DNA of 64,000 bases from contig OU015568.1 in NCBI GenBank assembly GCA_907165135.1, positions 5,518,001 to 5,582,000 on the forward strand. The letters are read 5' to 3'. Below the pieces are notes generated by a model. The model worked only from the letters and a program-made list of their open reading frames with translations, had not been told where the DNA came from and did no database searches. This document shows positions 31,531 through 59,300 of this stretch, piece after piece. The translations under genes and the position numbers were made by a program. The DNA is from Oikopleura dioica. Lineage: Eukaryota; Animalia; Chordata. Every line of letters begins with the position of its first letter. Position 1 is the first letter of the stretch.

Positions 31531-32078
31531 GCCAATGGTTCGCGCCCTAGCCAACGAAAGTCCGCCTATCGTCAGCTAATGATGAAAAAAGCCGCCGCGG
31601 CCGGGGAGCTTAATGTTGGCGCCGCGGCTGAGAGAAAAGCCGACGCAGGGAGCTTCCGCCGCGCTTCAATTTCGGTCCTACAAGAGGACAACAAGCGGCC
31701 CAGGAAGCCATCAAGATCGGACAAAAGTTCCGTCAAGTCGCCGCTGTCGACGTCGAATAATTCCAACCCGCGAAGTCTGGGCTCGGCAACTTGTGTTGAG
31801 AACCTGAGTCAGGGTCATTGAAGATCTTTCTGACCCTGACTCAGGTTTTCAACGCAGGTTGCCGAGCCCTGTCCAAAGTCCGCTGGCTTCGTTGACGATT
31901 TCGAATGACTCTGAGGATTGTTTTTACTCAAGGACTCGAGCTGACAACTCATTTTTTCCTCATTCTTTTATCCCATTTTTCATTTTTTCCCTAGCAATCG
32001 TTTACCCACCCATCTTACACATCCACGCAAGACAGTAACAAACAGCGATCCTTGAGGATATCAGTCAGCTCTAACAGT
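31531..32078 (+). CDS. Probable 5' Ser-rich exons of the AHCYL1/IRBIT gene, containing a family A MITE at 31777-31871
   Basis: Open frame ...KSPLSTSNNSNPRS|PLASLTISNDSED across the excised element; later exon KQRSLRISVSSN|gtaag; the link to AHCYL1 is inferred. Confidence 0.4.
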
Positions 32079-33109
32079 AAGTACCCTTTATTCTTCGAAA
32101 AGTCTAGAATTTGTAAGAAATATTGTGCATTCTCAAATGTCGTTTGATCTGATTTTTGAGCAGTTCATCTGTGTTGTAGGAAAAGTGGTGATTTCGGCCA
32201 TATTGGTGGTAGAGCCTTAAATTAAGATTATCGGATTAGCAAAAAAAACAGAAAGAATAATCTTGGATTAGATTTTCAACAGAAGGAAATGCTCTTAGAA
32301 AACCTGAGTCAGGGTCCTGAGACAGCTTTAATAAAAAGACGCCTTTTTCCAGGGCTCAGGAGCCTGAGTCAGGGTCCTGGAGCGCCATTGTTAAAAGCCC
32401 AAAAGACTTTTTCTGTTCTAGCAACCTGTGTAGAAACCTGAGTCAGGGTTTTTCAAAATTCTTTATTTTGAACTTTCTCAGGACCCTGACTCAGGTTTCT
32501 GCACAGGCTGCGGAGCACAGGAATTGCCTTTCGAAGTTTCTTCTATTAAATCTGTTTCAGGGCCCTGACTCAGGGTTGAACACAGGCTGCCCAGCCGAGG
32601 AAAAAGCCTTTTTGGTCCTTTTTGGGACACTTTTTCTTTTTTACCTATTATTAGCAAGTCTGTTCACTCCGAGTAAATCTCCATTTGCGAAAGAAAATAT
32701 CAGAAAGAAACTGAAAAACAAAAGTTGCATGTTTATGTTTTTTTTTCTCCCTGAATAAATCTGGGATGGATCAGTTTTTATAGCTGGCTAATTATTCGAG
32801 ACTCAGAATAATTATTTGATTTCGAAACATGCCAAGATTATCATATTACCTTGAATATGAGCTGTCAATGTCGCGGATTTGGGAAAAAATTGACACGGGT
32901 CATGGCGTTCCAAGCTCGCATTACAGTCAGACTACAGTAGTCTGACAGCGTATTTCATAATTTACAGGAGAAACCGGAGTAAACAAGTTTCAAAGAGGAA
33001 TCAGGGTCAAAGATGACGATTTTTGTTCTAAAATAACGTTTTTTTTCTCGATAATGACGACTTTTGACCGAAAAATGCGATTTTATAACCAAAAATTTTG
33101 ATTTATTGT

Positions 33110-33753
33110 GATAATTTCAAAAAATTTTTTGCGGGTCTGGAAATCGTAAAAAATCTAAAAGTGCAGTTTTCTTCAGCTCGTTGAGACGAGTCGAATGGTG
33201 TGTCAAACTCTTGATAACTCCAAGAATTGACCGGTTAACCGGCTGGTTACCGGAAAATATGTTTCCGGTCGCCCTTTTCGTTCTAGAAATGCTTGAATGA
33301 CGATTGAACCCGGAAACTGATCCTTATGGTTAGTTTTACTGTGGGCAAAAAGATATCGGTCAAATATATAACGCAACCTTGATAAACGATTAAAATTATA
33401 ATTTGTGTATGTATTTTGTTGTTGCTGCACCTTCCTAATTTTCGGTCCCATTTTCATGTGAAAATACAAATTTGGTGATACGCATGTCATGGTAAGAGAT
33501 ATGATTTTCATTTTTCGCCCACATAAGAACTAACTTTAAGGATCAGTTTTAAGGTTCAATCGTTATTCTAGCATTTCTAGATCAAAAACGGCGAGCGGAA
33601 ACGTATTTTCCGGTAACCAGCCGGTTAACCGGTCAATTCTTGGAGTAGTCAAGAGTTTGACACACCATTCGACTCGTCTCAACGAGCTGAAGAAAACTGC
33701 ACTTTTAGATTTTTTACGATTTCCAGACCTGCAAAATTTTTTTTGAAATTATC
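33110..33753. mobile_element. Foldback-type element with ~155-bp near-perfect TIRs
   Basis: 33110-33267 is the reverse complement of 33596-33753 (gacgagtcgaatggtgtgtcaaactcttg..ccggttaaccggctggttaccggaaaat). Confidence 0.85.
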
Positions 33754-35329
33754 TGTTGAAAAATGACCTTTTTCAGTGGAAAAATCGGAATTTTTTTATC
33801 AAAACAAACTATTTTTCGTTTTAAACTGGTAAAATTTGGTCAGAAAAAGTATTTTTTGGTCAAAAATACCAATTTCTGATAAAAATGACCAATTTTATTG
33901 TAACAATTGGGCTTTAAGGGACCCCCCAGCAGTATTTTGAGTAATTTGATGGGTCAAAAATAGGATTATTTGAAGAATTATTGCATCTGCGGCTGAAATA
34001 ATCTCCTGATCTCGGTCGATTCCGCATTTTCTCTTCATCCAAAAATTGAACGATTTTTTTCTTCTTCCTCTTCGAAGAAAATGAATTTGGAGAAAAAACC
34101 AATCTTGGAAAGGAAAAATACTTTTATAACAATTCAAGAGATAAGAAGAGTTTCTGCTGAAACGAGACAGTCAATTTTGAGAAATCAGTCCATAGGAAAA
34201 CGGCTTTTTCTTTATTTTAAAAGCCTCATTTTTCAATAAAAAAAATTAATTTGATAGGCACACCCTTATTAAACTCGCCATTAAAAATTAACAGAATTTT
34301 TAAATATGGTATTGATACCCTTAATCTCGAGTCGGCGACGGGAGGTTTCTGGAACCGACAAAAAACTTTCGACAAATTTTTCTTGGAAATTTTCAACCAA
34401 TCAGAAGCTGGCATTCGGCTATAAGCCGAGTTAAACTGGCCAATTAGCAGCCGAGTAGCCGCCCACGCAATATTTGTCGAAATTTTGTCTTGGTTCCAGA
34501 CACAATCCCTCGGCAACCTGTTTGCAAAACCTGAGTCAGGGTCTGAAAGACTTTTTGTAAAAGATTTTTCAGACCCTCAGTCAGTGACTCAGGTTTTCTA
34601 CACAGGTTGGTGAGCAAATTATCAGCAGAAAAGTGAGCCGTTTTTAAGATTCTTCATGTGAGTCCAAAAAATCAATCAAAACTTTTCACTCAAATTATTC
34701 AGTTAATCCTCTATCCGCCTGTTTGATTTTTGCCAAAATTTCCATTGTACCGAAATCAGAAATTCGCGCACTGACCTCTCTTTCAAATCAATTTTCAGCG
34801 TCGATGCCAAGAACACGCAATTTTAAGATTTTTTGTCGATGTCCCTTAAACTCTCGCAGAGAATTCAAGCAGGAAGCATCTTGCGACTGTAATAACGGTT
34901 TAATTAACGGTTACTATGATTCATCTTTTTGACAGTTGCTATTCTTCGCCAGAGCCAAAGAGGAGCTTCGTCAAAAGTACGGCCAGTCTTCTCCTTAATT
35001 ATCCCCGGCTCAAAGCTAATTAAAACCCTCAAAAGAATCTGTTGAATCTAATTTCTTCAGTCCTCCTTGATTTTGAGCCCCTTTTTCGCGAAAAAAATGA
35101 GCATTCCAATGAATATTTATGTCTGGCGGAAACATGCTAGAAAATTGGCTCGGAAACCTGTGTGGAAAACCTGAGTCAGGGCTTGAAAGATCTTTCAGAC
35201 CCTGACTCAGGTTTTCTGCACAGGTTTCCGAGACAAGCTAGAATGTCTTTTAACTCGACTCTTCTTGGAGAGGATTTTTCAGCATCCAGTTCTAGAGATT
35301 TCCATTTTCACGTGACTAACAATTTTCAG

Positions 35330-37442
<2,113 letters not shown>

Positions 37443-37572
37443 AATAAATTATTTTTCTAAATCCTCATCCCTCTCTCTCTTTCTGACTTGTGCAAGTACT
37501 AGAATTTGCCTCGAGGCAAAGTGGAATCTTTGGAAGCTCAATTAAGCCCTCTCATCAGAAATTCTAAGCAAA

Positions 37573-38440
37573 ATGAAAACAATTTTTATCCTAGCAAATT
37601 TTCCCTTCAATCAAGCATGTTTTTTCGGATCATCTAAGCAAGAAATTCAAGAGACATCTAGTTCCATATCCCCTACTAGAGCGCCAGTTCCAGTGCGTTC
37701 AAGACCAAAACCACCGCAAAAACGACCAAAAACTCGGCCAAAACTCGATTATGACCCGAAAGAGGTAGAAAAACGCCGAATTTTCTCGTCAGAACCGAGT
37801 ACAAGATGCGAAGCTCCGGGGGCAGAAGGCAAACCATGCAGGTAAGGAGCGCTTGAAGGTATAGAAAAGGAATGAATACTGAAGTTATACGATGAATGTT
37901 GGGCAAGATTGCGAAGAAAAACAGTGGTGGAGTGACAATGGTTGGACAATTTATCGATCAAAGAAAGAGTTTCATTTTTTTGAAAGAATGAAAAAGCGAT
38001 GAGCCACCCTAAGAAAAAATTTTTGAATTGGTGCAATGAAACTGCTCGGAACTTGCTTTTTTTCTTCATTAAGGGTATCACCGTGCTATTTTTGGGATGG
38101 TGCCTGGAAGTTCCAGGCTGGACCCAACAAAAAATCGACAAATTTTGCGTGGGCGGCCACTCAGCTGGTGATTGGCCGGTGAGCCGAATCCAGCCTTCTG
38201 ATTGGTTGAAAATTTCCACGCAAAATTTGTCGAAATTTTTGTCGGTTTCAGACACCTCCCCCTATTTTTTCGACAAAAAATTCTAGTGAAGGTTCGCTTC
38301 TGCACTCCTTGCTCCTCAAGAATATTCAAAAACTCTTCGAAAGTGCATGAAATCACCGAAAGACCCGCGATTTACTCTCCGAGAAACGCTAATTCAAACT
38401 TGTTCCTACGGAAAATGCCATGCTGGAGGCGGTTCTGGAT
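37573..38440 (+). CDS. Unknown multi-exon gene, Pro/Lys-rich N-terminal exon
   Basis: ORF 37573-37845 ends at a gtaag donor; possible later exons near 37880 and 38287; joins unresolved. Confidence 0.35.
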
Positions 38441-38596
38441 GAAGAGGACAAAACTCGCGATCAATTTTTGTAAACAGTTTATTAGTTTTTACTTTGACAG
38501 AACGAATAAACTCGCTGGAGGCAGGAGAGAATAAATAATAATCGACCAGACTCGCCCAATCCCCTATCAACGGCTGGTCGAGGTGTTTTTCTTCGC

Positions 38597-39899
38597 TTAT
38601 TTGCCAAGCAGCGAGGTGGAAGACTTTTTCGTCATTGACGATCGTCGGGCGTTGTCCTTGTGGCTCTGGAAGTTGACTTTGAAGCGGTTGTCGAGGGCTT
38701 CGGCGAAATCGGCGCCGGTTTGAGCGTTTCCTGCGCTTCGCGAGTCACGTGTCCATATGCTGATCTACAAAAAAACGATTCCCAATTTCCTAATTTTCTA
38801 GAGAGCTTCTCACCTTATCAGCTTTTCTGCGATTCTGCACGACGCAGCCGTTGATATTCTCGTGGTCAGCGAATTCTTCGTTCACCAGGATTAGCAACGT
38901 CTCGAGCCAGGTCGAGTTCAAGAATGAGTTTCTGTCTTTTTTCGTTATTTCGACGACGAATCTCCCGCCCTCGATGTTGTCTTCCGTTTCCCATTGAGGC
39001 TCGATCCCGCTGGAAAAAAAAACATTTTTATAATCATTATATAGATACTATAGAATAATGCTTATATTAAAGCCGCTTGCGGCTTCGACAGAAATTCTAC
39101 CTAGAATGGTGATCCTGCGAAGCCGCTTCGCGGCTTCGTTTGAAAAAGCCGCTGCGCGGCTTTTCATTCAAAATTTCGGGAAGAAAAGCCGCAAGCGGCT
39201 TTCGAGATTTTCACCAATAATAACCAAAATTTTAATGCGGCTTAAGTTTGACGAAGCCGCAAGCGGCTTTGCTCAGAAATAAAGACCTTTTGTTTACCTT
39301 CTGAAAACGTAGTAATCGTGATGATATCTCAAGTAGCTCGGCAGCTTCAAATGTTGGTAAATCGCCCAAAATTGCGCGACGGAATTGAAGCTTGCAATTT
39401 TGACGAGCTTGTCCGCCCATTCAGTCGCTTCGGGTCGAGTGGTGTAGACGTCCCAGGAGGAGTTCAGAGGAAAGTCGTGCTTCAGCAGTTCTTCTTCGAG
39501 CGTCAAAGCAGGGGTTTCCTGGGGAGCTTGGAGACTCTCGAGTAGGGTCGATTCGTCAGGGTTTGAAAAGCCTGGAATAGATACCATTAAGTACCGGTAG
39601 CGAAAACAAGGGCGGGAAAAAAGGAGGGCAAAAACAAGTTGAGAAAGAAAACTGAATTTGAAAAGAAAAACTTTTGCTCTCATTTGTTTCATAAATAACG
39701 ATTCTAGAAAGTGAGATTTCAACTTACTGTCGGAAATGCCAGAATCATCGATTCCCTCTTCTTCCGGAATCTTCGGCAGGTCGATTCCTCCCTCTTTGAA
39801 AGCTGGAGGTTCCTCTTCATTTCGCTCGAGATTGTCCTCCATGACTTCAATCAGCTTGGCGATGAAGGTCTCTCGAATCGACTTGACTTTGTGCACGCT
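38597..39899 (-). CDS. EIF4E: Cap-binding translation initiation factor eIF4E with an acidic N-terminal extension (first exon(s) further right, unresolved)
   Basis: HDFPLNSSW..TEWADKL..FNSVAQFWAIY..DYYVFR|SGIEPQWE..GGRF..TWLETLL..RRKADK|ISIWT..QSHKD; GT-AG introns in phase. Confidence 0.93.
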
Positions 39900-40084
39900 G
39901 AGTAATGGGTGGGAAAAAATGGGTTTGTGGGTTAGTCTGTTTTTAGGACGGCTGTGAATAAAAATAACGAGACGAAAGAAGGTTAACGATCAATAAAAAT
40001 AAAGGCGTTGTTCTAGCGAGAATCTGCTTGGCTATTCATCTTTTGAGAGTTATCTAGAATTTTAGGAGTAAACCAAAAAATTGA

Positions 40085-40290
40085 AGTGCATTTTCAGGTA
40101 ACCATTAAGATTGCTGTATCTGGCCTACCGGCCAATCAAATCCCTGATCCTTAAAATCACTTCCATATTTTGGTTCAGCCCAGAATTTCGGAGTGGAATC
40201 AAGTTTTCGAAGAGATTTTTATGGAAAGGGTTTTGATTGGCCGGTAGGCCAAATACAGCAATCTTATTGGTAATCCAAAAACTCACTTCC
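40085..40290. mobile_element. Palindromic MITE-like element with CCAAT boxes; partial copy at ~31305-31350
   Basis: gattgctgtatctggcctaccggccaatcaaa / tttgattggccggtaggccaaatacagcaatc. Confidence 0.75.
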
Positions 40291-40812
40291 AAACATTGGT
40301 TTTGTCCGAATTTCGAAGCTTTTTGTGTCTTTTTTTCTGTTGTTTATTGTAAAAAAGTGTAAGATTAAAGAACAATTATCACCCTTTTCCTGTAAGTAGG
40401 ATTGGAAAGCCTAGAGTTGACATGTTTGGTGGAAGTGTAATTAATCCTTGCGAACATTCAAAAAGTTTCTCTCGCTCTCCCTCTTTTGTCTCCTTCTCTT
40501 TGCCAAAATCTATTTGCCAATCTCAAATCTCAAATTTGCAGATCTGTCTTTTTCTTTCGTTTTTGAATTTGTCTCTCCGCCCTTCTTTTTTCAAAAAAAT
40601 CGATATTCTTCCTTGATTTCTTTTTCTTGACACTCTTTTTTGAGCGTTCTTTGCTGCAATTTTTTGTTTTTTGAAAGTTGAAAATTGCTCTTTTGTATTT
40701 TTTATTTTCGTGGTCGATGAGACCAGCTCGCCTCAGAGCGCGGCCAAAGATTACGCCCTGCCATGTTGCGCGGGGAAAAAGAACGTTCGGGAAGAATTTT
40801 TAGACCGAGTGT

Positions 40813-40825
40813 CACGTGATGACGT
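40813..40825. promoter_or_regulatory. Adjacent E-box (CACGTG) and CRE-like TGACGT upstream of eIF4E
   Basis: gtcacgtgatgacgtaat in a GC-richer island 5' of the gene; motif match only. Confidence 0.25.
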
Positions 40826-41209
40826 AATCTTGCGTTAGGCTTATTTCTGGTTACCACTGTAGCTGAACCTTCTATTTGAATAATGAAAGCCCATAAATAT
40901 AGTTCACCGAGGTTGTTTTTTGGGAAATCTGATTTTTGATCTTGGGTTCAAAGGTCAAGGGGGGCAAGAATCTTTTCAGGCAAGGAAAAAGGGGGCGTAA
41001 GGAGACAAAGTTGAAAGGGATCATGGAAGAGTTTTTCTATGGAAATTTCCTTTTCAGCGGATTTTTTAGACAATGGACAAAATTTGGGCCGAACAACCTG
41101 TGTAGAAAACCTGAGTCAGGGTTTGAAAAATCGGCTTTTCATTACCGTAGGGATTGGTCAGACCCTGACTCAGGTTTTCTTCACAGGTTGCAGTGGCCAG
41201 GACAAAATT

Positions 41210-43066
41210 ACTGAAATACTGTAGTTTGACCTTTATAACAATTTAATGTTTTCAAAGAAAGATAAATTGGTTGACACGATCTGTCAAAAAGAGTGAAACC
41301 AGAATGGAAAAGAAAATGAAAGAGGAAGATTCTCGCGATGCTCCATTTGTCGGAATCGGCTCGGGAAATTTCGGCCCGGAAAATGGCTTGTTTGAAGGAT
41401 TTTGACCTCTTTTCGGTGATTGTTTGCAAATTGCGAATGACTTTTCCTAAAAAAAACCAGTTATCGTTACCAAAAGAGTTTTTTCTAACCGAAAAGGGAG
41501 AGATCCACCAAGGCCCGACTTTTTCGACGGTTTCTTTCGTCCAGAGAAGTGCGTAAGGGTAGCTCCTCCAGCTTTCATCAACCTTTCCAAGCGACCGGTC
41601 GGGGCGTTCGTACTCTAAAAGGGCTTAAAATTAATAGGGGAATAAAAACCATACTGTGGACTAAATCAAAGACTTCGTAAAAAAGTCCGGCGCTGAAAAA
41701 ATTCGCTCTTCCATCAGCATCAGTTATCACAGCTCGTTCTTTTTCAATGGACATGTCGCATCTTCTAGCGAAAGGAGCGCAGCCAAACTAGAATGAACAT
41801 TTTCAGAAACAAAAATACTGATCCAGGTCTCGGCAACCTGCGTTAAAAACCTGAGTCAGGTTCTGAAAGAGCTTATTTTGAAAAGCCGCGTTTTTTGCGG
41901 CTGCTTTTTTAAGCCGCGTTTTTTTGCGGCTTATTTTTAAAAAAGGCCGCGTTTTTTTGCGGCTTTCTTTGAAAAAGCCGCGTTTTTTGCGGCTTCCTTT
42001 GTAAAAGCCGCGTTTTTTGCGGCTTCTTTAAAAAAGGCCGCGTTTTTGCGGCTTCCTTTGAAAAAGCCCCATTTTTTAAGGCTTCTCAATGCTCTCTCAG
42101 ACCCTGACTCAGGTTTTCTACACAGGTTGCCGAGCTCAGAACTGACCCCCTTATTTGATCAAAACCAAACCTTTGATTCAATAAAAAGTGAAAAAATCTT
42201 CGCATAAATGAGATCAGTAAAGGGCAGAATTTCCATTCCCCTTGAAACACAAAAAGAAGCAGCATCTTCGATCGTTAGATTTTTTCCCAAAACAATGTTT
42301 GAATTATTCGCAATTACACCCAAATTATCGCTGATGGGAATACAGACGACATAAAATCTCGATGAAGGGTTGAAATTCGCTGTTGATTCAAAAATGACAT
42401 TTCGCATCGTCTGAGGGACGTTTCCATCGACTTTGAGGCGGAGAACTGGAGATGAGGGCATTTTCTTGCTGTCATCGCTGCTGGAGAGCATCGGCAAATC
42501 CTTGTTTTGCTGATGATTCGCCCAGAAATGGTACTTTGGAAAAGCAACTTGAGATCCACTAGTGTGGTGCCTCATCTTGATGTATTTTCGATGAAGCAAA
42601 ATGCCCAAATTTTCCAAGTCATTCAAATTGAAAACGTCTTCCGGGGAGACCAAAAATCCTTTCATTCTGACCCCTGGGCTCGGCAACCTGTGTCGAAAAC
42701 CTGACTCAGGATTTGAATAAGCCGCAAAGCCTGACTCAGGTTTTCCACACAGGTTGCCGAGCCCAATCTGAGACAGTATTCCTTCGCATCATATGAGTTC
42801 AGCAATCCGGGAAAACTGAAGTATTCTGGGAAATTCTTGAACAAGATAATGTTCGACGCCTGTGTCTCTAGAATCTCCCGAAGTCTTATTTTTGCCTCGA
42901 AAGAAGCATCGAACGTTTTTGATCCGTTTATGTTGAATCGCTCGAATTCGAATTCAAGATCATGAAAGTCAGCTTCTTCTTTTGATTCGACAATCGGGTT
43001 TTCATTGATAAAATCCTGGAAACTGGCAAAAACAGCTGAAAAAAGTAAAAACACACTCAGCCCCAT
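41210..43066 (-). CDS. Secreted C-type-lectin-like protein (two degenerate CTLD starts), multi-exon; 3' end approximate
   Basis: MGLSVFLLFSAVFA signal; YDAKEYCLR|MKGFLVS and IEDAASFCVSRGMEIL match the CTLD A..yC...gg.L start. Confidence 0.6.
42674..42766. mobile_element. Family A MITE at a coding junction of the lectin-like gene
   Basis: TSD tctgaccc / tctgagac; removing 101 nt joins ORF 42662..43108 to ORF 42159..42686 in frame. Confidence 0.9.
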
Positions 43067-43248
43067 CTGAAATGATGAAAAAATGAAGAAATGGAAGGGA
43101 GCTGGCATAAAATATAGCCCTTATCAGTCGATAGTTTCGCTTGAATTTTCCTCTGCGCGGTTTACTGATAAGGATCAAAGGGATCAAAAGTTTTTTGTTT
43201 GAAACTTCTTTTTTATATAGAATTTATATTTTAATTTCTTCTACTGAA

Positions 43249-43695
43249 CAGAGTATTAAGTTTGTTGAGCTGAGTGAGCTGAGCTGGCTGAGTGAGCTGA
43301 GCAGTCGCTCAGCTCAGCTCAGTAATTTTCTAAAATGATCTGATCTGCTCAGCTCAGCTCAGCTCAATAATTTTTGAACTTGATCAGTTCTGCTCAGCTC
43401 AGCTCAGCTCAGACAAGTATCACTTAGCTCAGCTCAGCTCAGCTCAGACAAATATCGGTTAGCTCAGCTCAGCTAAGCTCAATGATTTTAACTTAATTTT
43501 ACTACTAAAATACAGTAAAAACAGCTCAGTTCAGCTCACTTAGCTCAGCTCAGCTCAGCTCAACTACCTAAAAAAAGGTCTGCTCAGCTCGGCTCATCTC
43601 AATGACCTATGAAAAAGGCCAGCTCAGCTCATAAAATTTTTTACGAAGCTCAGCTGAGCTCAGCTCAGCAAAATAAACCAGAATTTGCAACTCTG
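43249..43695. mobile_element. Family E hAT MITE
   Basis: cagagt...tttg start, agaatttgcaactctg end, gctga/tcagc arrays. Confidence 0.8.
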
Positions 43696-46272: not shown

Positions 46273-47222
46273 GACCAAAGAAATTATTTCTCAAGTTTTT
46301 TTTCGATGATTTGACTTTTCCTTTGATTTTTCCTCCTTGATTCGTATCTGTCCCTTTTTATTCAAATAAATTTGAAAAATGAATGAAAATTTAAGGTTAT
46401 GACTCATAACTTATGAGTTTAAATTTCATATTCGATAGAAGATGGACACAAATAAGGGTGTCAATCTGTCAAATCTTCTTACTCAATCGAGGTTGATTAA
46501 GGGCATCCCTTTAGGTAATTTTTGAATCAACATTTTTTCTCAATTAATTTCTTATTTATTAAAATGTCGCACAAAAAAGCACTTTGGAATGAATTTGTGC
46601 TCTTGAGTCGGTGCTTCGATTCTCGATTAAAAAATCATCTCCCCGTGTGAAGTTCTAATCAGCTGCACCAGCCGAAAAAGCACTTCCTCAAACCAACCGC
46701 TTCAATTATTCAAACGAGTGCTCCCGCCATCAGCTTCAGTACTTCACTAGAACTTTCGCCTTTTACACAACTTGACGCAAATTTGCAAAAAAAAAACTAT
46801 CAAAGGATAAAGAGGGATGATGATCGAGAGATTTCAGAAGCATAGAATACAGTATTAGAGCTCTTGTGACTGTAAAAATGAAGAAGAAACCGATCTTACT
46901 GTACATTTGCCTGTTACAATGTCTCTTTACCCAGGTAAGCAGCTGATCTGGTGAAGGATCGATCAAATCCTTTATAAATTCGCATCATGAAGAAGTTCTT
47001 CAATTTTTCCGAAAACTAACCACCACTTTCCTTGTCAATATCTAACCTTATTAGTCAACAAACGAGCCCATGAAGGTAAAAAACGCATCTTTGCTCGCTT
47101 TTACGGAAATCCAGAAAAGCAAACTATCCATTTTTTGTCGAATTTGCAATTCCCCGATGCAAATTTACGCATCGTCGTAATCATTATCGTTTCATAATGT
47201 TATCAGTAGCGCTATTGCATCA

Positions 47223-47294
47223 TCCGTGTTAGTATAGTGGTGAGTATTCCCGCCTGTCACGCGGGCGACCGGGGTTCGATTCCCCGACACGGAG
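47223..47294 (+). tRNA. trnD-GUC: tRNA-Asp(GUC)
   Basis: TCCGTGTTAGTATAGTGG..CCCGC-CTGTCAC-GCGGG..GGTTCGATTCC..CACGGAG, 72 nt, then a T7 terminator. Confidence 0.97.
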
Positions 47295-47328
47295 CGTTTT
47301 TTTCGCCCTTTTTTCAGCCCTTTTTAGG

Positions 47329-50300
47329 TGTTGGGCCAGGATGGCGACCGCCAAGAAGTGGTCGGGGGAATGCTTAGCTCGGAACTGGAAGTGGTCGATA
47401 ATGGATACAGGCATTTAAACGTGATTATTTCTTCGAAAATCCAACAAGAAGAAATTTGCGAAGACGAGGAAAAACGACTGAATTGCAAAAGAACTTTCAA
47501 ATTTATCGAAAAAGTCAAGGATTTCATCAAACTGTAAGAGTCCCCAGTACAGTCAGATTCACCCTTATTTTGTCAAGCTTGTCAAAATCGATTTACGAAG
47601 CTTCCAGGGGTCATTTTTACATCGAAAGCTGCAATATCATCATGCCCAAATCGTGGGACGCGCCACCAGGTTGTCGAAAAACCGAGGGGTAGAGCCTTAA
47701 TCCCTCTTTTCAGCGAACGAAACAGAAGCGCTGAACTTTGGCGGGACCATTTCCTACATTGACTTTGACGCAATTCCGATTCGGATTTACCCCGACATGG
47801 TAAAAACCACTCCTTCCAAATTGGAAGCTCCAATCAAAATTGAATCAAAATTGCATGAATAATCAAAAATTCCATAATCTGCGTAGGGCGAATCAGGCTT
47901 TTCAGAGTACAAAGCGGGGCCAGTGTCACGTGACTTGATTTCAGTCAATGTTTGGAATAAGAACAGAAGATCCATGGTCTGGCTTATTCTCCTCCTTGAT
48001 TTCAAATGTTCTCATTGTTTCTTTTTTTAGCAAAATAAATTGACGGGAGAAAAACTTGTCCGGCGACCATATGCGGTAAAAGCGACCCCTTGTGGATACC
48101 AAGGGTCGTATCTAAGGCTGGGCTCGGCAACCTGTGTAGAAAACCTGACTCAGGGTTCTGAAGGGGATTTTTCTGGAACCGACAAAAAAATTTCGACAAA
48201 TTTTGCGTAGGCGGCTACTCAACTGCTGATCAGCTGGTTTGCCGAATCCAGGCTTCTGATTGGTTGAAATTTTCCACGCAAAATTTGTCGGTTCCAGACA
48301 CCTCCACTTTTTCTGAAGGGCGGTTTTTTATCAAAGGCCTTTCAGAAGCCTGACTCAGGTTTCTACACAGGTTTCTGAGCCCTAATCTCAGAATGTCGCA
48401 AGCATTCATCGAAGACCCCCAAAGCCTGAACTTCACGGCCTATGGAAACCCCGAGAAAATCCTCGCTGGAGAATGGGCAAAGTTCCGCTGGGGCGTTTTC
48501 GACGAAACCCCTCCGCCAAACAAGGGCCACGAGTTTTACCTCGCCTCGAATTCGAGAATCGAAGCAAGTCGATGCTCGTTGAAAGTCGAGGGCGATTTGA
48601 TCTTGAAGGAAGATACTGAAGATGGGAGGATCAAGGGCGATGAGTGTATGCGGATGGAGGCGTTTCAGTCGAGAAATTTATGCGAATTTGTCCCGAAAAA
48701 GCAGCAGAAACAATCTGGACTGGGGAGCTTGCTGTTTTCGAGGCATTTGGATGATGTTACGGAGTACTGTGATAATGGTAACGGAATAATTATTGGTTAA
48801 GCCTTTAGGTAGGTGTCTGGAACCGACAAAAAAATTTCGACAAATTTCTCGTGGAAATTTTCGACCAATCAGAAGCCTGGATTTTGCAAACCGGCCAATC
48901 AGCAGCCGAGTAGCCGCTCACGCAAAATTTGTCGAATTTTTTTTGTCGGTTCCAGACATCGCCCCAAAATTTTACCAATAGAAAAAATTCTAGAATAGAT
49001 TTTCCGGGAAAATTGAAGAAACCATATATCCTTTTAAAAATCTTTGTTTAAATATGTTTATATTTACAACTACCTTGATGAATTATCACAAATATCTCGA
49101 TGTAATGCGTAGTGATGGCATGCTATTCATAAAATTTAATTATAAAATTTTATTAAGATCCCGAGAAGAAATTAACCTTCCACAACCGCGACGCCAAAAC
49201 GCGCCACAACGAAGTCTGCGACACAAAATCCATCTGGGAAGTAATCCGCGCGCACGATGATTTCATCAAGGGCGCCAAAGGAAAACCAGTCCGCGACTTT
49301 GACTCGACCAACAAAGGTCTTTGGATGAACACCAAATTCACCGTCATGCGACAAAACAACACGAAAACGGTCCTAACCATCGACACTTCTACCTCCATGG
49401 GCGTCGGGAAAAGATGGGAAAATGTGAAAAAAGCGGCGTCGCAATATCTCTCCGCGCTGCCGCACGATGCTCACGTGGGAATCGTCTTTTTCGCCAGACG
49501 AGCGTATCAGCGAACAAGAGGCCTGATTCAAATTGAAAACGGCGATTCCAGCGAGCTTCTTCGGCGAAGATTGGAATCTGTCCCGCTCAATTTGGGCACT
49601 TCAATCGGCCACGCTCTTCAGGAAGCGATGAAAATGCTCAAGACTTCTGGTCCAATGGATTCGCGGGATTCTGGCGGCTCGATCATTCTCCTATCTGATG
49701 GTGCTGAAAGTAATGCGCCGTTCATTGATGAGGATTTGATTCAAGAGCTGATTGATAACAGAGTTACAGTCAATACAATCGCTTTTGGAAAAGACGCCAG
49801 CCCAAAGCTTGAAGAAGTCAGTAAGCGGACAAAGGAACGGGCTCGGAAAACTGTGTAGAAAACCTGAGTCAGGGTCTAAAGAGCTTAAATAACCTGTTTA
49901 AGACCCTGACTCAGGTTTTCTACGCAGTTTCTTGAGCCCAGAAAAGGGATCATCATACTTTTCCGACCCAGAAAACCCAAGTTCCATCCTTCAAGACGCC
50001 TTCATCGCCGAGTTGCAAAAAGATGGCTCCAACGCCCACCCAATCGTTTCGGTAAAACGAGCGATAAACGCTGGCTCGACGGAGGAATTCGACTTCAAGA
50101 TCGATCAAACAATCGGAAAGGATACGAAAATAACGATTTCCTACGAAACGAATGCGGAAAAGGACAACCGGCCTGAGATCAAGATCAACACTCCCGGCTA
50201 TCCGAGGCCGATTATTGCTGATATGCAGGAAAAGGGCTTATTTTTTCATTCGGTTTATTTGCAGAATATAATTTTATAATTAAGTTTTTTCAGAAAATTT

Positions 50301-53300
50301 TGTATAGTTTTCGATTCAGACAGTGATAATGATGATATCGTTTTCATTTTAGCAGTGATTATTGAAAAGCTCTATTTTGAGTTGAATTTAGTTGAAAAAG
50401 TTGATGGTATGGGTTTCGTTTTCATTTTAAAATTTTTGAGCTTAGCGGGTATCATCGTTATTTTATCGAAAAATCTGACCAAAAGAGGGCGCTAGCTGAT
50501 TCGTGTTCAAGATGGTTAGTCTTCTTGTGAACTCCCGCTGAGATTGAACCAGTCAATCGAACCACCAAGAAAATGACCGTCCTCTTTTCGAGATTGTTAT
50601 GGAAGAAATTTCATCAATAAAAAGCCCTTCTTAGAACAAAGTCTCTGAATCAATCAATCCTGAAACTGGTGAACCAGCTTATACAGTCGCCTGGCGAGAA
50701 AACCTCGAAGACGGCCTGATCACTGTCGATTTGACGGGCAAAGCTGACAATGGAACCTACACGATTTACGTCAAAAACGACCACTCGAGCCCCGCTTCTG
50801 TCCACATCAACGTCGTCAGTTACGCCAGAGAGCCGGATCGTGAGCCAGTGACGCTGACCCCGACGATTATTCAGAAAAAGATCGCTCCGAGCAACACGGA
50901 CATTGTCGTCATCTACGCTGCCTTTGCCCAAGGAGAGTTTCCGATTCTTTTCGCCGATCTTTGGGCGGAAGTCACTTTTCCTCTCGAGCGAAACGGGACG
51001 ATCATGACGACCGAGACGGTCATTTTGACTGATGATGGCAAGCACGATGACGTCATCGCCAACGACGGGATTTACACGGGCATTTTCACGAACATCTTTG
51101 AAACGGGGAGATACAGTATCAAAGTGAGAGCGAATGGGGATAACGGAAAAGCTGTGGTTTCAAAAGGACACATGCTGGGAATCGGAGAACTGGACGACGC
51201 GGAATATGAAGTCGTGGAAAACGCGGTGCACAAAGAAGTCTGGCAGACGACGCGAAGACGGAAGAGGCGAAATGTCAGAACGACGAGGGATAGGCGGCAA
51301 TCTGATGGAGAAGAAGATTATGAATACGACGATGGAGAAGAGGGGGTAGAGGAAGAACCGCCAAAGCGAGTGGAAATACCGGTTATTTCGCTAAAAGAAC
51401 CGGCAACGAATCAAGATCGAGTTGAGCTCAACAGTAAGTTTGACCGGAACAGATATGTTTTCATCATTTTTCTAGAGCAACTGGAAGCCCAAAAACTAGC
51501 TCGACTAACTCGAGTCTCCGCGCAAGATACTGAGCGAGTGACAAATCTGGACACGATAGTTATTGAAGCCTCAGAGACAGATCTTTGCGACGAGGGCTTC
51601 TTTCATTTCGACGGGTTTTGCTACTTTATTTCCAGGGATGTGCAAGAGCAAAAGAACTTCAAAGAAGCGGAAGACGCCTGCGCCGAAATGGGCGCCGAAC
51701 TCATCGACATCCGAACTCTCCAAGTCGCCCAATACTTTCTCGTCACCCTGCGAGCTCGCATCAAAGACTTCTGGGCGAGCGACGTCAACGACAAGATCGT
51801 CAATCACATCCCCCTGCTCATCGACAACATCTACTCCGTCACGGAAGTCCAGGCAATCCTCGACGGGCTCCTGGGCCGAGTTGCCAAAGAATTTTACTTG
51901 CGAAAAAAGGATCAAGAAAATTCTTTCGCCCGAATGGCCAGTATAAGACAGCATAGAGATCCAGACTTTGATAGGGATATCAGACGGCTTTACGAAGATT
52001 TGACAAAGAATATTCAAGTGCCAATGACTTATCTCCAGCGCCGTATTTTCGAAAAGCATAAAAAGACGGTCGACGAGTTGTCTCAAGAAGAAATCGAAGA
52101 AATCAAAAACGAATGGAAAGGAAAACAGCTTCAAAAGCTGGATCATTTCAAAGAGCAACTAATCGACAGGGAAAAATTCGAATTCCGGTCGCCCCGATTT
52201 CTCGCTTCTTTCGAAAGAGCAAAGAGAGAAATCGACTCGCTTCAATTTGGACCGTGTCGGTACAAGGACATTTTTCATCGTTATCGAAAAAATCGAAAGT
52301 TCGCGATTTGCCATTCCGAAAAACCGGTCATTTGCCAGCTAATTTCTCCGAAAAACGCGCACAATCGAAACTGCCCCGGGAACTGGACCGATTTTGAAGG
52401 ACATTTTGACAGCTCAGACATTTGCTATCATTTCAACGAAACAAAACGAAACTTTTTCGAGGCCGAAAAGTACTGTCAGGAAAAAGGAGGAACATTGCTC
52501 CGAATAAACTGCGCGAATAAAGAAGTTTTCGAAATCAAGGAAGAAAAAATCGACACTTTTTGGATCTCAAACATGGATACTTCCGGACTCAACGATCTCC
52601 AGTGCTCGAAGATGTCTGAAGAAATCATCAGGAAGGCAGAGGTAAGAGACAAAAAAAACCAAAAAGCCCTCCCGAACCGGGAATCGAACCCGGGCCGCCG
52701 GAGTGAGAATCCGGAATCCTAACCCCTAGACCATTCGGGACCGGATGCGGAGGGAAATCTTCGATTCTACAAATGATTGAATATTCCTTTCTAGAGTACG
52801 ATTCCAGAGCCAGAAGAGCCGACAGCGAGTGGGATGCAGATGGATGTCTTTGTGAACAAACCCGTCTTTACATTTGGAAAAACCGGTGCCAACGCATTTG
52901 CTCGATCAGAAGTTGTTGAGGATGAAGAGGGAGCATCAACAACTACCACTTCAGCAACAACAACAAGCACGACGATTACAACTTCGACAACATCAACAGA
53001 AATGCCATCTTCGACTACGACCTCCGACCCGTTGGATTCTGAAGAGAACGATCCAGCGGAGGGAGAAGAAATCGACGATGGAGTTTACGATGACGATGAC
53101 GATAACGAAGAGGACGATGATGATGATGTTGAGGAAGATGAGTACAATTCAAACGACGTGTACGAAGAAATGATCAATCAAAACCCCACCGAAGTCCCCA
53201 TCGTCGATGTCGAAGGTGAAACGTACTGTATGTGGTTCGATGGCCAGCTGCGCGAAGTCACCAACGATTTTCTCTGCAAGAACTTGAAGAAAAACTACAT

Positions 53301-56300
53301 CTGCCAAAAACCAAAGAACGATCTTCTCGCTCCAGCGAGGATTAAAGACCTCGATGTTCAACACTTTACTTCTGGTTCCGAAAAAGACCCCTTGGGCTCC
53401 TTCCACATCGGCTTCACCGCAACTGGAAATGACGATTCCCAAGGAAGAGCTGATCGTTATGAAGTCCGAATGGTCGCGACAGAAAAAGGCAAAGAAGCGC
53501 TCCGAGATGATTTTGACAAAGGATACCACTTGCAATACAGCGATTTTAGCAATGAAATCACTAGTCGGCCAGATAGTCCGCAAAAGGTCGGGTATTATGA
53601 GCGGTTGACCATTCGTTTTGAACATCTTGCTGGCTGCCCGAGAAATCAGCTGATGGATTTGTTGGTCTTGGTCGATACGACTCAGGAATCAGATTTGAAA
53701 AATCCGCCCGCACGGTGGCGCCTTTTCCCTAAACGGCGAAAAATCGACCTCCTCGGTAGAAAATCGCTCATAAAGGCAATTTTCTTCCTAGAAAAAAATG
53801 TGGAGATGCGGGGGATTGAACCCCGGGCCTTTCACATGCAAAGCGAACGCTCTACCACTGAGCTACATCCCCGTGATCATCGGTCCGAGATCAGTAAGAG
53901 TGTATTCAAATCTAAAAATCAGGGAAATCAAACTGCTGGAATCGAGCTCTATCTACCAGCCCATACGCTCAAGATTTTGACCTATATTGGCAATGTTTAT
54001 AATATAGGACCGGCTCCTTTCATATTGTGATTAAGGGTGTCCCCTAGCCTAAATCCTTCCTCGTAAAAAGCCGCGAAAAAGGCCCTTGGGCGGCTCGTAT
54101 CGGCTTCGGAACATGGGATGGTCGAGAAATCAGGACGGAAATTTATCCCGATGAAGTTGGAACAAAACACAAACAAAGCTACGAAGAAACAAAGCAAGAA
54201 ATGAACGAGACGATTTCCAAATTTTACCCAAAAAGCGACAATAAGTTTGATCAAAATTTGAAGAGTTTTGCTCCGTCGAATATTCCTGTAAGTTTTATTA
54301 ATATTTTCGGACAAAATGGTGGCTAAGCCAGTTGATTGGATGAAAACCCTTGTTTTGCGGCGCGATTCCGGCAACTTCCAAATTTCGCTCTAGAATTATT
54401 TTTTCTGCCAATCAAAGCCCGTTATTTCGTACCTTTTAGAATCTTAGCTTGATCTTCTTCAAGCTTTTTTCGCTCTTTTTCTTCGTGCTCTTTTTCCTTC
54501 GTTTCGCGCAATTTCTCGCGGTGCATTCGTTTGAAATACTCTTTTCGTTCCTCGAACATTTTTTGCGTCACGATTCCAGTCGGCATTTCCGGGTAGAATC
54601 GATCGTTGATGAGATGGGCTTTCGGAGTCATAATCATTTCCTTTGAGTAGTGCATGCAAGTTTTTGTTTTTACGCTGAAAAGGAGAGGATAAAAGGATTG
54701 ATTGTCACGACTGTCACGAATCTCACAAAGATCACGACTCATTTATCCCGAACAAAGTCAATATCGATTTTATTTGAACAAAAAATAGATAATGCTAGAA
54801 TGGCTGTTTTGAAAATCGTGACATTCGTGACATTTTTATCTGTCACGATTCGTGACTCACGAAATGCCAGATGACAATCAGAAAAGAGGAAAAAATACTT
54901 AATAAAAGGCAATTTTCGTTGTTTTTTATTATTTTTTCCGTGAATCGTGACATTTTTTGCAATTCGTGACGCTCGTGACATTTCTAAGTGGTCATTTTTT
55001 ATTTAAAAAAGCGCAAAAATCGTCACGAAACGAGAAGAATTCTGAGATGAAAGGCGAATTTCGATTTTTTGAGTGAGTCGTGATATTTTTGCAATTCGTG
55101 ACAATCGTGACAAAAATCCCAATTTCATCTCACCTTTTTTGATAACCAGAAGTGGAGGTAAACTCAGAAATCGTTCTTGTAAAATCTTGAAGATTGTTCA
55201 CCCCGGCTTTTTCTCTCAAAATTCCTAAACTATTCTTGAAATCAAGGAAGAAAGAACTAATCGACCTGTAAAGTAAATGTCCTCAATTCTAAAATCTCCT
55301 AGGTACGTTTTTCCGACTTGCTCTCCAATCGCTTCCAAAGACTTTCGATTCATGACCGCGCATTGCCCATTGCAGTAGTCGGGGTATTTGTATTTTGGCG
55401 GGAACATTTCATACGTGACATTGTATTTGCCCCAGTAGATGGCGCCGTGGTTCCGGCCAGTGTGCCTGAGACACATGATCATTGGTTCCTCTTCCGTCAT
55501 TGGTCGATGGTAGCAGCTTTCTTTGGGCTCGGCAACCTGTGTCAGAACCTGAGTCAGGGTTCGAAAAGTCTTTTCAGGGTCTTTTCAGGACCCTGACTCA
55601 GGTTTTTACTCAGGTTGCCGAGCCCAAATCGTTGATCATCGTCTTCCAGGTCGTTGCAAGCTCTATTGTAGTTCTCGTCCATTTCTTCTTCCCTCATCGA
55701 GTTCCGGACGAGTTTTTCGATGTCGCCATGAATCAAAGTATCGGAATCGTGAAAGTAATACTGCGAAATCTTTTCCGAGCAAAATCGAAGAGCGAATTCG
55801 TACAAGCTCTTTGTTTTCAGCGGCAAGTTATTGTATGTATCCGGAAAATCCGCGATCACGATGTCGTTGAATTTGTTGAACTCGTCTTCCAGGAAATCTC
55901 CTTCTTCCCAAGGTTGGCCGGAAGGAGAAGTTCCGAGGAAGAAGATGTAGTTTTTGATTGCAAGGCCGTTTTGGCGGAAATATCGGCGGATTCGGAAACG
56001 TTCTTCTACTGCGTTTCGGGCTGTCTGAAATTTTAGTCAAAAAATAGAAAATTTTAGGCGCCATAAAAAAAAATCGATATTATTACCTTAGTTTTCAGAA
56101 ATCTAATAAAATTATGAAAATAAAATTTTTATTGAAATAATAAAAAAAATCATTAATAAAAATAATTTTTTTGAAATTTCTGGCAATTTTTTTGGATGGT
56201 GTCCGGAACCGACAAAAAATTTCGACAAATTCTGCGTGGAAATTTTCAACCAATCAGAAGCCTGGATTTGCCTTAACGGCCAATCAGCAGCCGAGTAGCC

Positions 56301-59300
56301 GCCCACGCAAAATTTGTCGAAAATTTTTTGTCGGTTCCAGACACCATCCCAATTTTCTCAAGCTAAAATACAAATCTTACTTTTAGCATGTAGAGAGCCT
56401 TATTCCCAATCTGATCACATTGATACTTCTCCACAAACTCGACCGGATATTTGAGAAACCCATTGAACTCCTGTTTCATATCAAATTTGTAAATTGGCGG
56501 AATATCATCGCTTTGAAAAGTGAGCGAAATATTCATAGCTTGGGTGTTTGACGGGAGTTCTCGCCCGTAAAACTTTTGGAATCGGTCTTCAGTTTGGGAA
56601 ATAACAACGGGTGGTAGGATCAGTGGTCGAAGAGAAGCTTCCCATTGGTGTCTTGTAGACTGGGCTTGGCAACCTGTGTAGAAAACCTGAGTCAGGGTCC
56701 TTAAAAAGGGGAGGTGTCTGGAACCGACAAAAAAAATTTCGACAAATTTTGCGTGGGCGGCTACTCGGCTGCTGATTGGCCGGTTCGCCGAATCGAGGGT
56801 TCTGATTGGTTGAAATTTTCCACGCAGAATTTTTCGTTATTTTTTTGTCGGTTCCAGACACCTCCCCTTAAAGAGCTTTTGCGGGGGTTCGAGCTTCCTT
56901 CAGAACCCTGACTCAGGCTTTTACACAGGTCGCCAAGCCAAGCTTGTGAAGGCGAGTTTTGCCATGCGTTTCGGAAAGTCCAGAAACAGGGTCGATCGAT
57001 GCACGTCCTTTTCTTCCTCGATGAGGGCTAGAACATCTTTTCCGTGGAAAACCAGACCGACTTTTGGCGACCCGAGGATTCCGAAAATCCCCGCTTTGAT
57101 ATTCGCCCTGATTTTCTTTAGCATTTCTTCGTCCAATTGAATCACCGGATTAGCAAGGCTGATGTAGATGTTTTTCTTGGCTCCTTTGTCCTTTTCCACG
57201 GCGATGAGGTTGTCAAGAACTGGGTTGTCGAAAGTCCGGAGGCCGTTTTGGACAAGCACGTGATCCATCGAGTGCATCCCCATTTCGACGTAGAGCAGCT
57301 TGGTTTCTTTGGACAATTTGTGGGAGATTGTTATTTCTTGATCGATGATGAAGGTCGGTGAAATCGGAAAACCGAGATTCGTCTCGAGCCGTTTGAACTC
57401 GTATCTCATCACGCTCATGTACGGCTCGCCAAGCATATTCAACGCGTCCAAATTTCGGTGAAAAGGGACCAAAACCTTCACTTCCCCAATTTCCATCTCG
57501 CGTTTCATCCTTTCCCGAGCATTGTCGAGCTCAATTTTACTCTGTAACCAGCCGTAGAAGACGATCAAAAAGCAAATGATATTATTCATTCTTGAAAAAA
57601 CATATCTTCGCAGCTCGAACATCGCAAAAATGAGCTGTTTTTGACGCAAAAAAGTTTGGAGCGCCGGTGATTTTTATCGCGATTTTTGGCAAAAAAAAGG
57701 GTGGAAATTTGAAATTTGTTGATTATTTTTTTCTTTTCAGGGGCAACAGAGAAAAGCGCTGAAATTTGATGATGTTCTTGGATGGAAAGACGATTTGGCG
57801 GAAAAAGGTCATTTGAGAGATGAAGGAAAGGATTCGATTGCTGATTTTGAAGACCAAAAAATCAGGCTTTGATTCCTAAAAAAGTCAAAACCGTTGTCCT
57901 CTTCATCACTACCCGTGGCGAACAGTGCTGCTCGCCTCTTTCTCTCGCCGAAAAAGCTAGAATTCCTGAGCTTGAATTCGTCTCCCTCGCCATCGGAAAC
58001 CAACCACCAAAGAATTGGCAAGAAGCGTTCAAATTCGTCCCCGAAACAGACGAAGAACGACTTGATCGACTTCTTGGAACGAAAAGTGAGTCTTCCTTGA
58101 TTTCAACCATCAATTCTCTCTTTTTCTAGCGTCTTCGACAACAGAAACAGTCGTCGAAACAGCAGAAACAGAATCAGAAAGCCCCGAAATCGCAGCTCGA
58201 AAAAGGAGGCGCCGAAGTTCCGAAATCGTCGAACAAGAAAATGAACGGACCAAACGAGCTGGGCAGATTTATGCCAGGAGAAATGCGCTTGATTACAAAG
58301 AGGATGAAAAGGTCGACTTTTTCTATCAAATGGAAGATTTGAACACGACTTATCACCATCGAATGTCCAAAGTTACCCAGCTTATTTGCCATGCGAAAGA
58401 AACTGAGGTTTGCAATAGAATTATAATTGACACCCTAATAGGGTGACACTATTGTTACTTATGATTGGTTAATTTTCACTGAAATCCAAAAATAAAAACA
58501 AAAATCAGAAAATAGAATTTAAAACAGAAATCTGCTAAAAATCGAGAAGCCGCTTGCGGCTTCGAGTATTTAAAATAATTAAGCCGCGCGAAGCGCGGCT
58601 TTTTTGCTTTTTCTACTCGAAACTGCAAGCGACTTCTCGATTTTTAGCAGATTTCTGTTTTAAATTCTGTTTTCTGATTTTTGTTTTCATTTTTTTGGAA
58701 TTTCAGTGAAAATTATCCAATCAGATTTCGAAATTTATTATACTATTCTTTTTCTTTTAGAGAATGAAATATCGAATCTATCTTTTATTCCCTTTTCAGA
58801 CTCGTTATTTCTCAATCCGTGCCTGCGACAAAGCCGGCAACTGTGGCATCCCCTCTCCGCTCGCCCCAGTTCGAGTCACCCTCTACTACGATTCCAGTCT
58901 GAGAAACATGGTAGGCTTGATAAACAGTCTCCCAAGGACATGTTCAACGAACTAATCAAACTTGCCAATATTACCAGATCTGTAATAGACTTTGCTCGAT
59001 CCGGATCCATTCGGGCTAATAACAGTAGTATTAAATATGAGAGTTAATACCGACAGAAACTGGGTATCAACGCGAAAAACTGAAAATTACCGAATAAATG
59101 CCGGCTTTTTCAGTCAAAAATAAAAACGCGAAAGCACGCCTTTTTTGATCGCTGATAATTTTTGAATTCACAAATTATCGGATTCTGGTTGAACCAAATT
59201 CAAGCTCCTTCAAAGCTATTCAAAAACTTCAAGGCGAGTTTCAAGCTCAAAAATGAAAATAAAATATTTGTCTGTTGTCCGCTTCCGCTTTCTCTCCCAT

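Follow-up and report, generated by a model that had tools for sequence, protein, structure and literature searches.

Known transposon-made introns and the family A elements

Among animals, Oikopleura is the textbook example of runaway intron turnover, and how it gains introns has been an open question since 2004–2010. The work of Denoeud et al. in 2010 reportedly dealt with the Bergen genome of O. dioica, and introner-like DNA transposon introns in Micromonas and Aureococcus were reportedly found by Huff, Zilberman and Roy in 2016. Here, we report on a family of miniature inverted-repeat transposable elements (MITEs), family A, in a 64-kb window (the whole stretch of DNA that was analysed, on contig OU015568.1) of O. 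dioica OKI2018_I69 (Okinawa). Five of its copies, in genes for CLCA-like, GT31, and C-lectin-like proteins, are very likely lineage-specific introns derived from the MITE, with the element plus one copy of its target-site duplication (TSD) making up the intron body.

Introns made by transposons (introners) are well known from algae, fungi, dinoflagellates, and other groups (PMC9860276, PMC11282704). Family A resembles the introners (PMC9860276) in being a multi-copy non-autonomous DNA element that enters exons of unrelated genes as lineage-specific gains, in that element plus TSD would become the intron, and in that the TSD would supply or complete one splice site. It differs from the algal ones in its chordate host, its 8-bp TSD and its long perfect terminal inverted repeats (TIRs); moreover, introners bring a fixed built-in GT...AG, whereas the splice sites of family A vary from copy to copy and its splicing is predicted only. 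The text of the 2022 introner survey does not mention Oikopleura (Gozashti et al., PMC9860276).

A second known system is that of the appendicularian Fritillaria borealis, in which MITE-derived non-canonical introns were described (Henriet et al. 2019; summaries in PMC11282704 and PMC13326754). According to these summaries, the Fritillaria introns share with family A sites the animal class, TIRs and TSDs, species-specific positions, and tolerance of non-GT donors. They come from a different MITE family and are mostly AG-AC or AG-AT after an exonic TAC, whereas the introns predicted for family A have AG at the 3' end and GA, GC, GG, or uncertain donors. Table 1 of Yenerall and Zhou 2012 (PMC3443670), citing the 2010 genome paper, counts O. 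dioica itself among the species that gained introns through transposon insertion; the gain ascribed to Denoeud et al. 2010 concerns the same species complex and the same proposed mechanism, while family A concerns the Okinawa lineage. The portions of the O. dioica genome papers available to the search report high intron turnover, 11–12% non-canonical introns, and MITE screening, and describe no MITE family acting as introns (Denoeud et al. 2010 being outside that search); likewise, the available portions of the literature searched contain no description of family A. The mechanism is an expected one. Within the literature checked, the novelty lies in the family, in a density of six to seven exon insertions per 64 kb, and in the clean ancestral states.

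Family A copies at coding junctions

Repeat finding and pattern scans of the window gave ~15 copies of family A per 64 kb, 93–314 bp in size, with a TIR of 38 nt (consensus C(T/A)GGGCTCGGCAACCTGTGTAGAAAACCTGAGTCAGGG). An earlier note on this DNA had described such a family with degenerate 8-bp TSDs; both are real, and the positions given there for six copies (copies a–f in Table 1) were correct within 1–2 nt. The short copies (93–116 bp) are hardly more than both arms, which are identical at 32–35 of 38 positions (3–6 mismatches), and fold into near-perfect hairpins (−72 to −80 kcal/mol, z-scores −11 to −13). Copies with a second MITE nested in them measure 267–314 bp; in 48118 (267 bp) and 56660 (283 bp) the nested MITE belongs to a second family, family B. 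The 8-bp length of the TSD is clearest in copy 41084-41199, where the flanks are identical over 10/10 nt with the 8/8 TSD within. Ten other copies score 4–6/8 against ~2/8 expected by chance: copies 42674, 48118, 49837, and 56660 retain 6/8, 31777 retains 5/8 and 55523 retains 4/8, and several non-coding copies also reach 6/8. With TIRs, a fixed-length TSD, and short multi-copy sequences without coding capacity, family A has the make-up of a MITE. In DNA run X6, contig ends stack by hundreds at the family A edge. Family A was not found in ~21 kb of relatives' orthologous contigs.

The earlier note had placed the family in the hAT superfamily. Speaking for this are the 8-bp TSD, the short non-coding TIR structure, and the CAGGG/TAGGG/CTGGG-type ends, all as in hAT MITEs; unlike those, family A mostly has T instead of A as its second terminal base (the ends are CTGGG or TTGGG in the majority of copies, CAGGG or TAGGG in a few), and the TSDs are not consistently nTnnnnAn. 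P and Merlin elements likewise generate 8-bp TSDs. Pfam scans of the long open reading frames (ORFs) of the 64-kb window found no transposase, only host genes (astacin, IF4E, CLCA, VWA, lectin, sulfotransferase). We consider family A as probably hAT, based on TSD length and termini alone.

All of copies a–f are flanked by two open frames on the gene strand, just as had been claimed. Read-through or exonisation of the elements was rejected: each copy has TIR stops (..GTG TAG / TAA) or changes the frame, and the length of element plus TSD is not divisible by 3 in 5/6 copies. At 31777, in the AHCYL gene, removing the element and one TSD leaves both open frames in register (..NSNPRS/PLASLTISNDSEDCFYS; here and below a slash in a residue or nucleotide string marks the junction). 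The metagenome scan found no relatives for this N-terminal exon, and we regard the copy as a probable intron-making insertion. A seventh case lies in a sulfotransferase-like gene at 4341-4596, where a degenerate family A copy is located near 4383-4556. There are at least five exon insertions in the window, and seven if 31777 and 4341 are counted.

A contrast is given by copy 41825, located within a GT-AG intron (42170-41786) of gene g9942. This intron retains 32 + 39 nt of its own sequence around the copy, while the exon copies have no such sequence. The frame is lost at this intron in the ORF of a relative (P0008) as well, so the intron is older than the insertion.

Empty sites in related lineages

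Briefly, relatives were obtained as ORFs from seawater metagenomes and one Logan assembly in protein searches with the flanking exons, and are 70–88% identical to the window; elsewhere the ORFs run into introns, which shows that their contigs are genomic. At every tested site the relative's DNA runs on without a break, and the sequence duplicated in the window occurs there only once. Excising the element plus one TSD yields exactly the protein length of the relative in 6/6 tested cases, i.e., five of copies a–f (all but 31777) and 4341-4596. The earlier note's proposal that such removal restores the protein is thereby upheld for its five copies, and orthologous sites in related lineages, which it had named as a check, are empty for 5/5 of the copies compared, the TSD being single-copy there.

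At 49837, SKRTK/GSSYF in the window faces SKRTKGSSYF in contigs L001 and L002, continuous across 49833/49943; these two contigs are only 79% alike and are counted as two lineages. At 48118, the window's GSYLR/MSQAF is uninterrupted in L001 (GSYLRMSQAF) across 48104/48412. At 55523, DDDQR/CYH corresponds to DDDQRCYH in L003/L004 (P0003, 87% identical), continuous across 55628/55515. At 56660, KLAFT/RHQW compares with KLAHVRHQW; L003/L004 are continuous across 56952/56650, with 10 nt in L003 where the window has 301 nt, and a third lineage, L007 (P0010), is also without this copy. At 42674, EYCLR/MKGFLVSP in the window is the continuous EYCLRLKGKMVSP in L006/P0008, and in the seventh case DVRIFR/EIQNNPEI is the continuous DVRIYRELQDNPEI in L008, of equal length.

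One may ask whether the MITEs instead entered pre-existing introns, which the relatives then lost precisely. O. dioica does have high intron turnover, a 41-nt intron (55225-55265) of the window is missing from L003, copy 41825 does lie in an old intron, and the empty-site relatives might all come from a single sister clade. At six sites in four genes, however, nothing lies between the two exon ends but the element and one 8-bp exon repeat that is single-copy in relatives, with no other intron sequence, so that six precise losses of introns with an original length of zero would be required. We consider this extremely improbable. The polarity, insertion into uninterrupted exons, is based on the TSD/TIR footprint and not on presence/absence alone.

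Several other differences were seen between the window and its relatives. The 41-nt intron just mentioned (GT-AG, minus strand, GT31 gene) is absent in both L003 and L004 and is a presence/absence difference without a MITE. An intron of the CLCA-like gene after ..PGYPRP (50250-50635) is present in the window and L001 and absent in L002 (667-670), a further instance of intron turnover. The CLCA exon that holds site 48118 has, in L001 at ~843-937 and 25 nt downstream of that site, a different AT-rich element of 95 bp with the ends GGGCTC...GAGCCC, an independent exon insertion in another lineage. In L007, an element of the (GCTGA)n type at 1610-1750 has entered the GT31 exon 4 nt upstream of the 55523 site, and the contig ends inside it; the (GCTGA)n-type repeat also occurs in the window at 21.5–22.0, 25.8, 26.7–27.0, and 43.3–43.6 kb.

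Constraint on the interrupted genes and age of the insertions

In the exons on both sides of each tested element, pN/pS against the relatives is ~0.05–0.4 (pN 0.04–0.20, pS 0.5–0.96), the substitutions being concentrated on third codon positions, which marks these exons as under strong purifying selection, and the CLCA-like gene has an open frame of >1000 codons downstream of both 48118 and 49837. DNA run X6, which has the same species label and is 90–97% alike in unique sequence, carries insertion 55523 with both junctions; in the CLCA exons downstream of both elements, 9/10 of the fixed differences listed between X6 and the window are at third codon positions. TIR arms are mismatched at 3–6/38 and TSDs at 2–4/8, so the insertions are not fresh, and despite this age the host genes have accumulated no frameshift or stop. 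The view of the earlier note that the insertions are old and tolerated and the genes probably functional agrees with TSD retention (4/8–6/8), low pN/pS, and open frames.

The public annotation of OKI2018_I69 is RNA-seq-guided (Bliznina et al. 2021, PMC8008620). It has a single CLCA model of 1648 aa, and Pfam CLCA and VWA matches flank elements 48118 and 49837 on both sides. Constraint, open frames, and this spanning model, taken together, give good indirect support for removal of the elements from the mRNA. Of the note's central claim that the family has been creating introns, the exon insertions, empty in relatives at five sites and with conserved flanks, are well founded, and the splicing is a prediction. 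We infer that the spliceosome removes the elements, as we do the exact nucleotides it would use.

Predicted splice sites

O. dioica accepts GA, GC, and GG donors; canonical GT-AG introns predominate in the genes of the window. Removal of no more and no less than the element and one TSD can be positioned to end in AG in 7/7 cases, and in 3/7 it also begins with G[A/C]: 48118 would be GC-AG, 49837 and 4341 GA-AG. The two predicted GA donors, 49834/49835 (AAAG/GAAC) and 4340/4341 (TTAG/GAAA), match the published context of the abundant O. dioica GA-AG introns, i.e., an exonic AG upstream and an A downstream of the donor (PMC7072748). It had been proposed that G[A/C/T] donors arise in the TSD or TIR and that the element end GAGCCC-AG supplies the acceptor. 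Together with AG, such a donor gives the exact length for 48118 and 49837 and fails to do so for the other four of copies a–f; the ...CCCAG 3' end is found in 3/6 (42674, 49837, and 56660) and is lacking in the other three.

On the 3' arm, the order is CTGAC, then TTTTCTACACAG (pyrimidine tract, AGs), then the terminal AG. AG-containing TSDs as a selection signal were rejected, as they occur in 6/7 exon copies and also in 3/4 non-coding ones and are indistinguishable from a target preference. Selection for a pre-mRNA hairpin was dropped: the hairpin is stabler on the sense strand in 4/7 exon-inserted copies and on the antisense strand in 3/7, i.e., without bias.

Maize Ds and dSpm elements in exons are spliced via cryptic sites near their ends, often leaving or removing a few codons. 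Those are single leaky mutant alleles, while family A seemingly represents many fixed loci under purifying selection. Splicing inside the TIRs of family A would leave 16 nt of the element and the 8-nt TSD in the mRNA, an in-frame insertion of eight codons whatever the phase or orientation. It could use GG-AG via YT/GGGCTC...CACAG/GTTGCC or GT-AG via AACCT/GTGTAG...CCCAG/, with 2+14+8 = 16+0+8 = 24 for the consensus, and CACAG is the first well-placed AG past the branch-like CTGAC. No stop would arise in the resulting frames of copies a, b, c, and e, nor in those of d and f with one-nt shifts, and the downstream frames reach into the 3' TIR (..LPSPGVRMKG, ..FLSPNLRMSQAF, ..VAEPKESCYH). Yet eight extra residues would have to fit into conserved domains (the C-lectin fold just after a Cys, VWA, and GT31), the register or the required AG/GG is gone in copies c, d, and f, and the 6/6 exact-length match to relatives would be an irrelevant coincidence; an in-frame remainder, with its 1-in-3 chance, is not significant alone. 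We think splicing inside the TIRs rather unlikely, though not to be neglected, and prefer excision of the element plus one TSD.

Transcript data and points against intron function

A number of observations weigh against the elements being introns. RNA runs X11, X12, and X14, which carry this species label and were mapped to 51750-57749, gave no junction at 55523 or 56660; most of their reads are <90% alike to the window and come from a diverged cryptic lineage. Among the RNA runs listed, none was shown to contain this stretch. For 31777, 42674, 55523, and 56660, the exact-length AG-ending excisions need TC, AT, AT, and CT donors, respectively, which are not documented O. dioica types, and the in-frame solutions with a G donor at these four sites alter the protein by −1 to +2 codons, or by up to +8 codons with all G-donor solutions counted. 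The hairpins of the short copies could mask internal splice signals. If the empty-site relatives are one clade, presence/absence alone gives no polarity of gain or loss. Finally, the public model of g9942 begins at an internal Met (42575), downstream of element 42674, therefore the annotators' pipeline had no usable intron there, and this could reflect that no supported junction exists at that site.

Several points would fit gene-breaking insertions, i.e., unspliced elements in null alleles or young pseudogenes, perhaps covered by paralogs: no RNA junction in the mapped runs, a g9942 model truncated at 42674, four sites without an exact-length GN-AG solution, and B3GalT-like paralogs present in the group (P0004–P0006). 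Such a reading has to contend with flanking exons that are all open, including the >1000 CLCA codons, with the pN/pS values on both sides of each element and the third-position differences of X6, with 55523 being common to lineage X6, and with host frames that are free of frameshifts and stops although TIRs and TSDs have diverged. It is also implausible that conserved genes were knocked out independently six to seven times in 64 kb. We therefore regard broken genes as quite improbable and retain the MITE-derived introns as our preferred explanation.

Proposed mechanism and what it would mean

In our proposal, family A would be a non-autonomous MITE, probably mobilised by a hAT-type transposase encoded elsewhere, that expanded in the Okinawa-type lineage after its split from the sampled lineages and inserted into continuous coding exons of unrelated genes (CLCA-like, GT31, C-lectin-like, sulfotransferase, and probably AHCYL). 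The likely acceptor would be an AG, lying either within the downstream TSD or at the ...CCCAG terminus of the element, probably aided by the branch-point-like CTGAC and the TTTTCTACAC tract on every 3' arm in either orientation of the element. The likely donor would be a weak site at the junction of the upstream TSD and the TIR.

These insertions would offer a concrete source for the fast intron gain of O. dioica, with six sites checked against relatives and the ancestral uninterrupted exon kept in sister lineages. As sister lineages carry different insertions a few nucleotides away, the share of MITE-made introns becomes a testable question, and others follow, such as which splice sites are used first, how a TSD evolves into a splice site, and how the relaxed 5' splice-site rule relates to transposon load. 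One may go further and suppose that family A and allied MITEs are a main engine of the massive, lineage-specific intron gain in O. dioica, i.e., that an introner burst fixed thousands of exon insertions within the ~25 million years since the cryptic species split, that a large share of the GA/GC/GG-AG introns are its scars, and that the palindromic ends were pre-adapted to the role. This is possible, although on balance we doubt it. If true, the palindromic ends would suit introns well: whichever way the element lies, each end would provide AGs, a pyrimidine tract, and a branch point, and the 16 nt left behind would always be in frame together with the 8-nt TSD.

Host genes, annotation, and other features of the window

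The features of the window are collected in Table 1. Protein P0007 (g9942) is 100% identical to the minus-strand frame 42162-42788 in protein search, and the locus retrieved for it, L005, has the same sequence as the window. On the minus strand at 42575-43120 there is an upstream exon encoding the signal peptide and the first half of the lectin-like domain; it is conserved in P0008 and is in no model seen. This is a practical problem, as gene models may be truncated at such introns; that of g9942 loses the signal peptide and half of the lectin domain. The GT31 identity of the galactosyltransferase gene comes from collinearity with L003 and from PF01762 on its homologs. A representative search for its public model gave no hit to the gene itself and brought up P0010/L007.

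Table 1. Coordinates of family A and family B copies, predicted introns, and genes in the window
Feature	Position	Strand	Remarks
Window	OU015568.1:5518001-5582000		Assembly GCA_907165135.1, O. dioica OKI2018_I69 (Okinawa); PAR scaffold
Copy a	31777-31871	+	95 bp; Ser-rich N-terminal (IRBIT-like) coding region of AHCYL; TSD CGCGAAGT / TCCAAAGT (5/8)
Copy b	42674-42766	-	93 bp; C-type-lectin-like domain of secreted protein; TSD GTCTCAGA / GGGTCAGA (6/8)
Copy c	48118-48384	+	267 bp, nested family B 48187-48319; CLCA N-terminal domain; TSD ATCTAAGG / ATCTCAGA (6/8)
Copy d	49837-49941	+	105 bp; end of VWA domain, CLCA-like gene
Copy e	55523-55627	-	105 bp; Galactosyl_T (GT31) domain; TSD TCAACGAT / AGAAAGCT (4/8)
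Copy f	56660-56942	-	283 bp, nested family B 56733-56865; GT31 stem region; TSD TTCACAAG / TCTACAAG (6/8)
Seventh case	4341-4596	+	256 nt; sulfotransferase-like gene; family-A-like element, AAGGCTC...GAGCCTT ends
Family A, non-coding	34505-34618, 35145-35236	+	3.3-kb stretch between AHCYL exons (~32035-35320)
Family A, non-coding	41084-41199		Just 3' of g9942 stop codon (41252); flanks GGACAAAATT perfectly duplicated
Family A, contrast copy	41825-42138	-	314 bp; within GT-AG intron 42170-41786 of g9942 (P0007 exon mapping)
Family B MITE	48187-48319, 56733-56865, 18123-18255, 38129-38261, 48810-48960		TIRs GGTGTCTGGAACCGACAAAAAAATTTCGACAAATTT
Predicted exact-length intron, site a	31776-31878	+	TC-AG
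Predicted exact-length intron, site b	42767-42667	-	AT-AG
Predicted exact-length intron, site c	48117-48391	+	GC-AG
Predicted exact-length intron, site d	49835-49946	+	GA-AG, AG/GAA context
Predicted exact-length intron, site e	55629-55517	-	AT-AG
Predicted exact-length intron, site f	56942-56652	-	CT-AG
Predicted exact-length intron, seventh case	4341-4596	+	GA-AG, AG/GAA context
G-donor alternative, site a	31779-31878		GG-AG, +1 codon
G-donor alternative, site b	42768-42674		GA-AG, +2 codons
G-donor alternative, site b	42764-42667		GG-AG, +1 codon
G-donor alternative, site e	55630-55521		GA-AG, +1 codon
G-donor alternative, site f	56939-56652		GG-AG, +1 codon
G-donor alternative, site f	56953-56660		GC-AG, −1 codon
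AdoHcyase/AHCYL gene	start before 31252, end 37442	+	Public annotation; CDS (coding sequence) range spans copy a
IF4E gene	40457-38597		Public annotation
Gene g9942	42575-41252	-	Public annotation; protein P0007
CLCA-like gene	46878-54030, end past 52575	+	Annotated product 1648 aa; hosts copies c and d
Beta-1,3-galactosyltransferase-like (GT31) gene	54083-57622	-	Collinear with L003; hosts copies e and f
GT31 gene exons	57622-56943, 56660-56379, 56034-55628, 55522-55266, 55224-55155, others down to ~54083	-
tRNA Asp-GTC	47223-47295	+	Nested in CLCA-like gene
tRNA Glu-CTC	52669-52740	-	Nested in CLCA-like gene
tRNA Ala-TGC	53800-53872	-	Nested in CLCA-like gene

Two of the three tRNA genes nested in the CLCA-like gene lie within long open frames, so the true CLCA exons are shorter than the ORFs. 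Inferring splice sites from the 1648-aa length of the CLCA product was given up, because the three tRNA genes and further introns in the long ORFs make the exon chain non-unique. The nested tRNA genes explain the depth spikes of the reads mapped to 51750-57749.

Family B occurs nested in two family A copies and also solo, one solo copy being within an old GT-AG intron of the CLCA-like gene (48776-49152). Elsewhere in the window, a long open frame at 8916-11138 (plus strand) has an astacin metalloprotease domain with calcium-binding EGF domains after it, and five diverged tandem repeats of ~1.6–2.2 kb each occupy 20943-28750.

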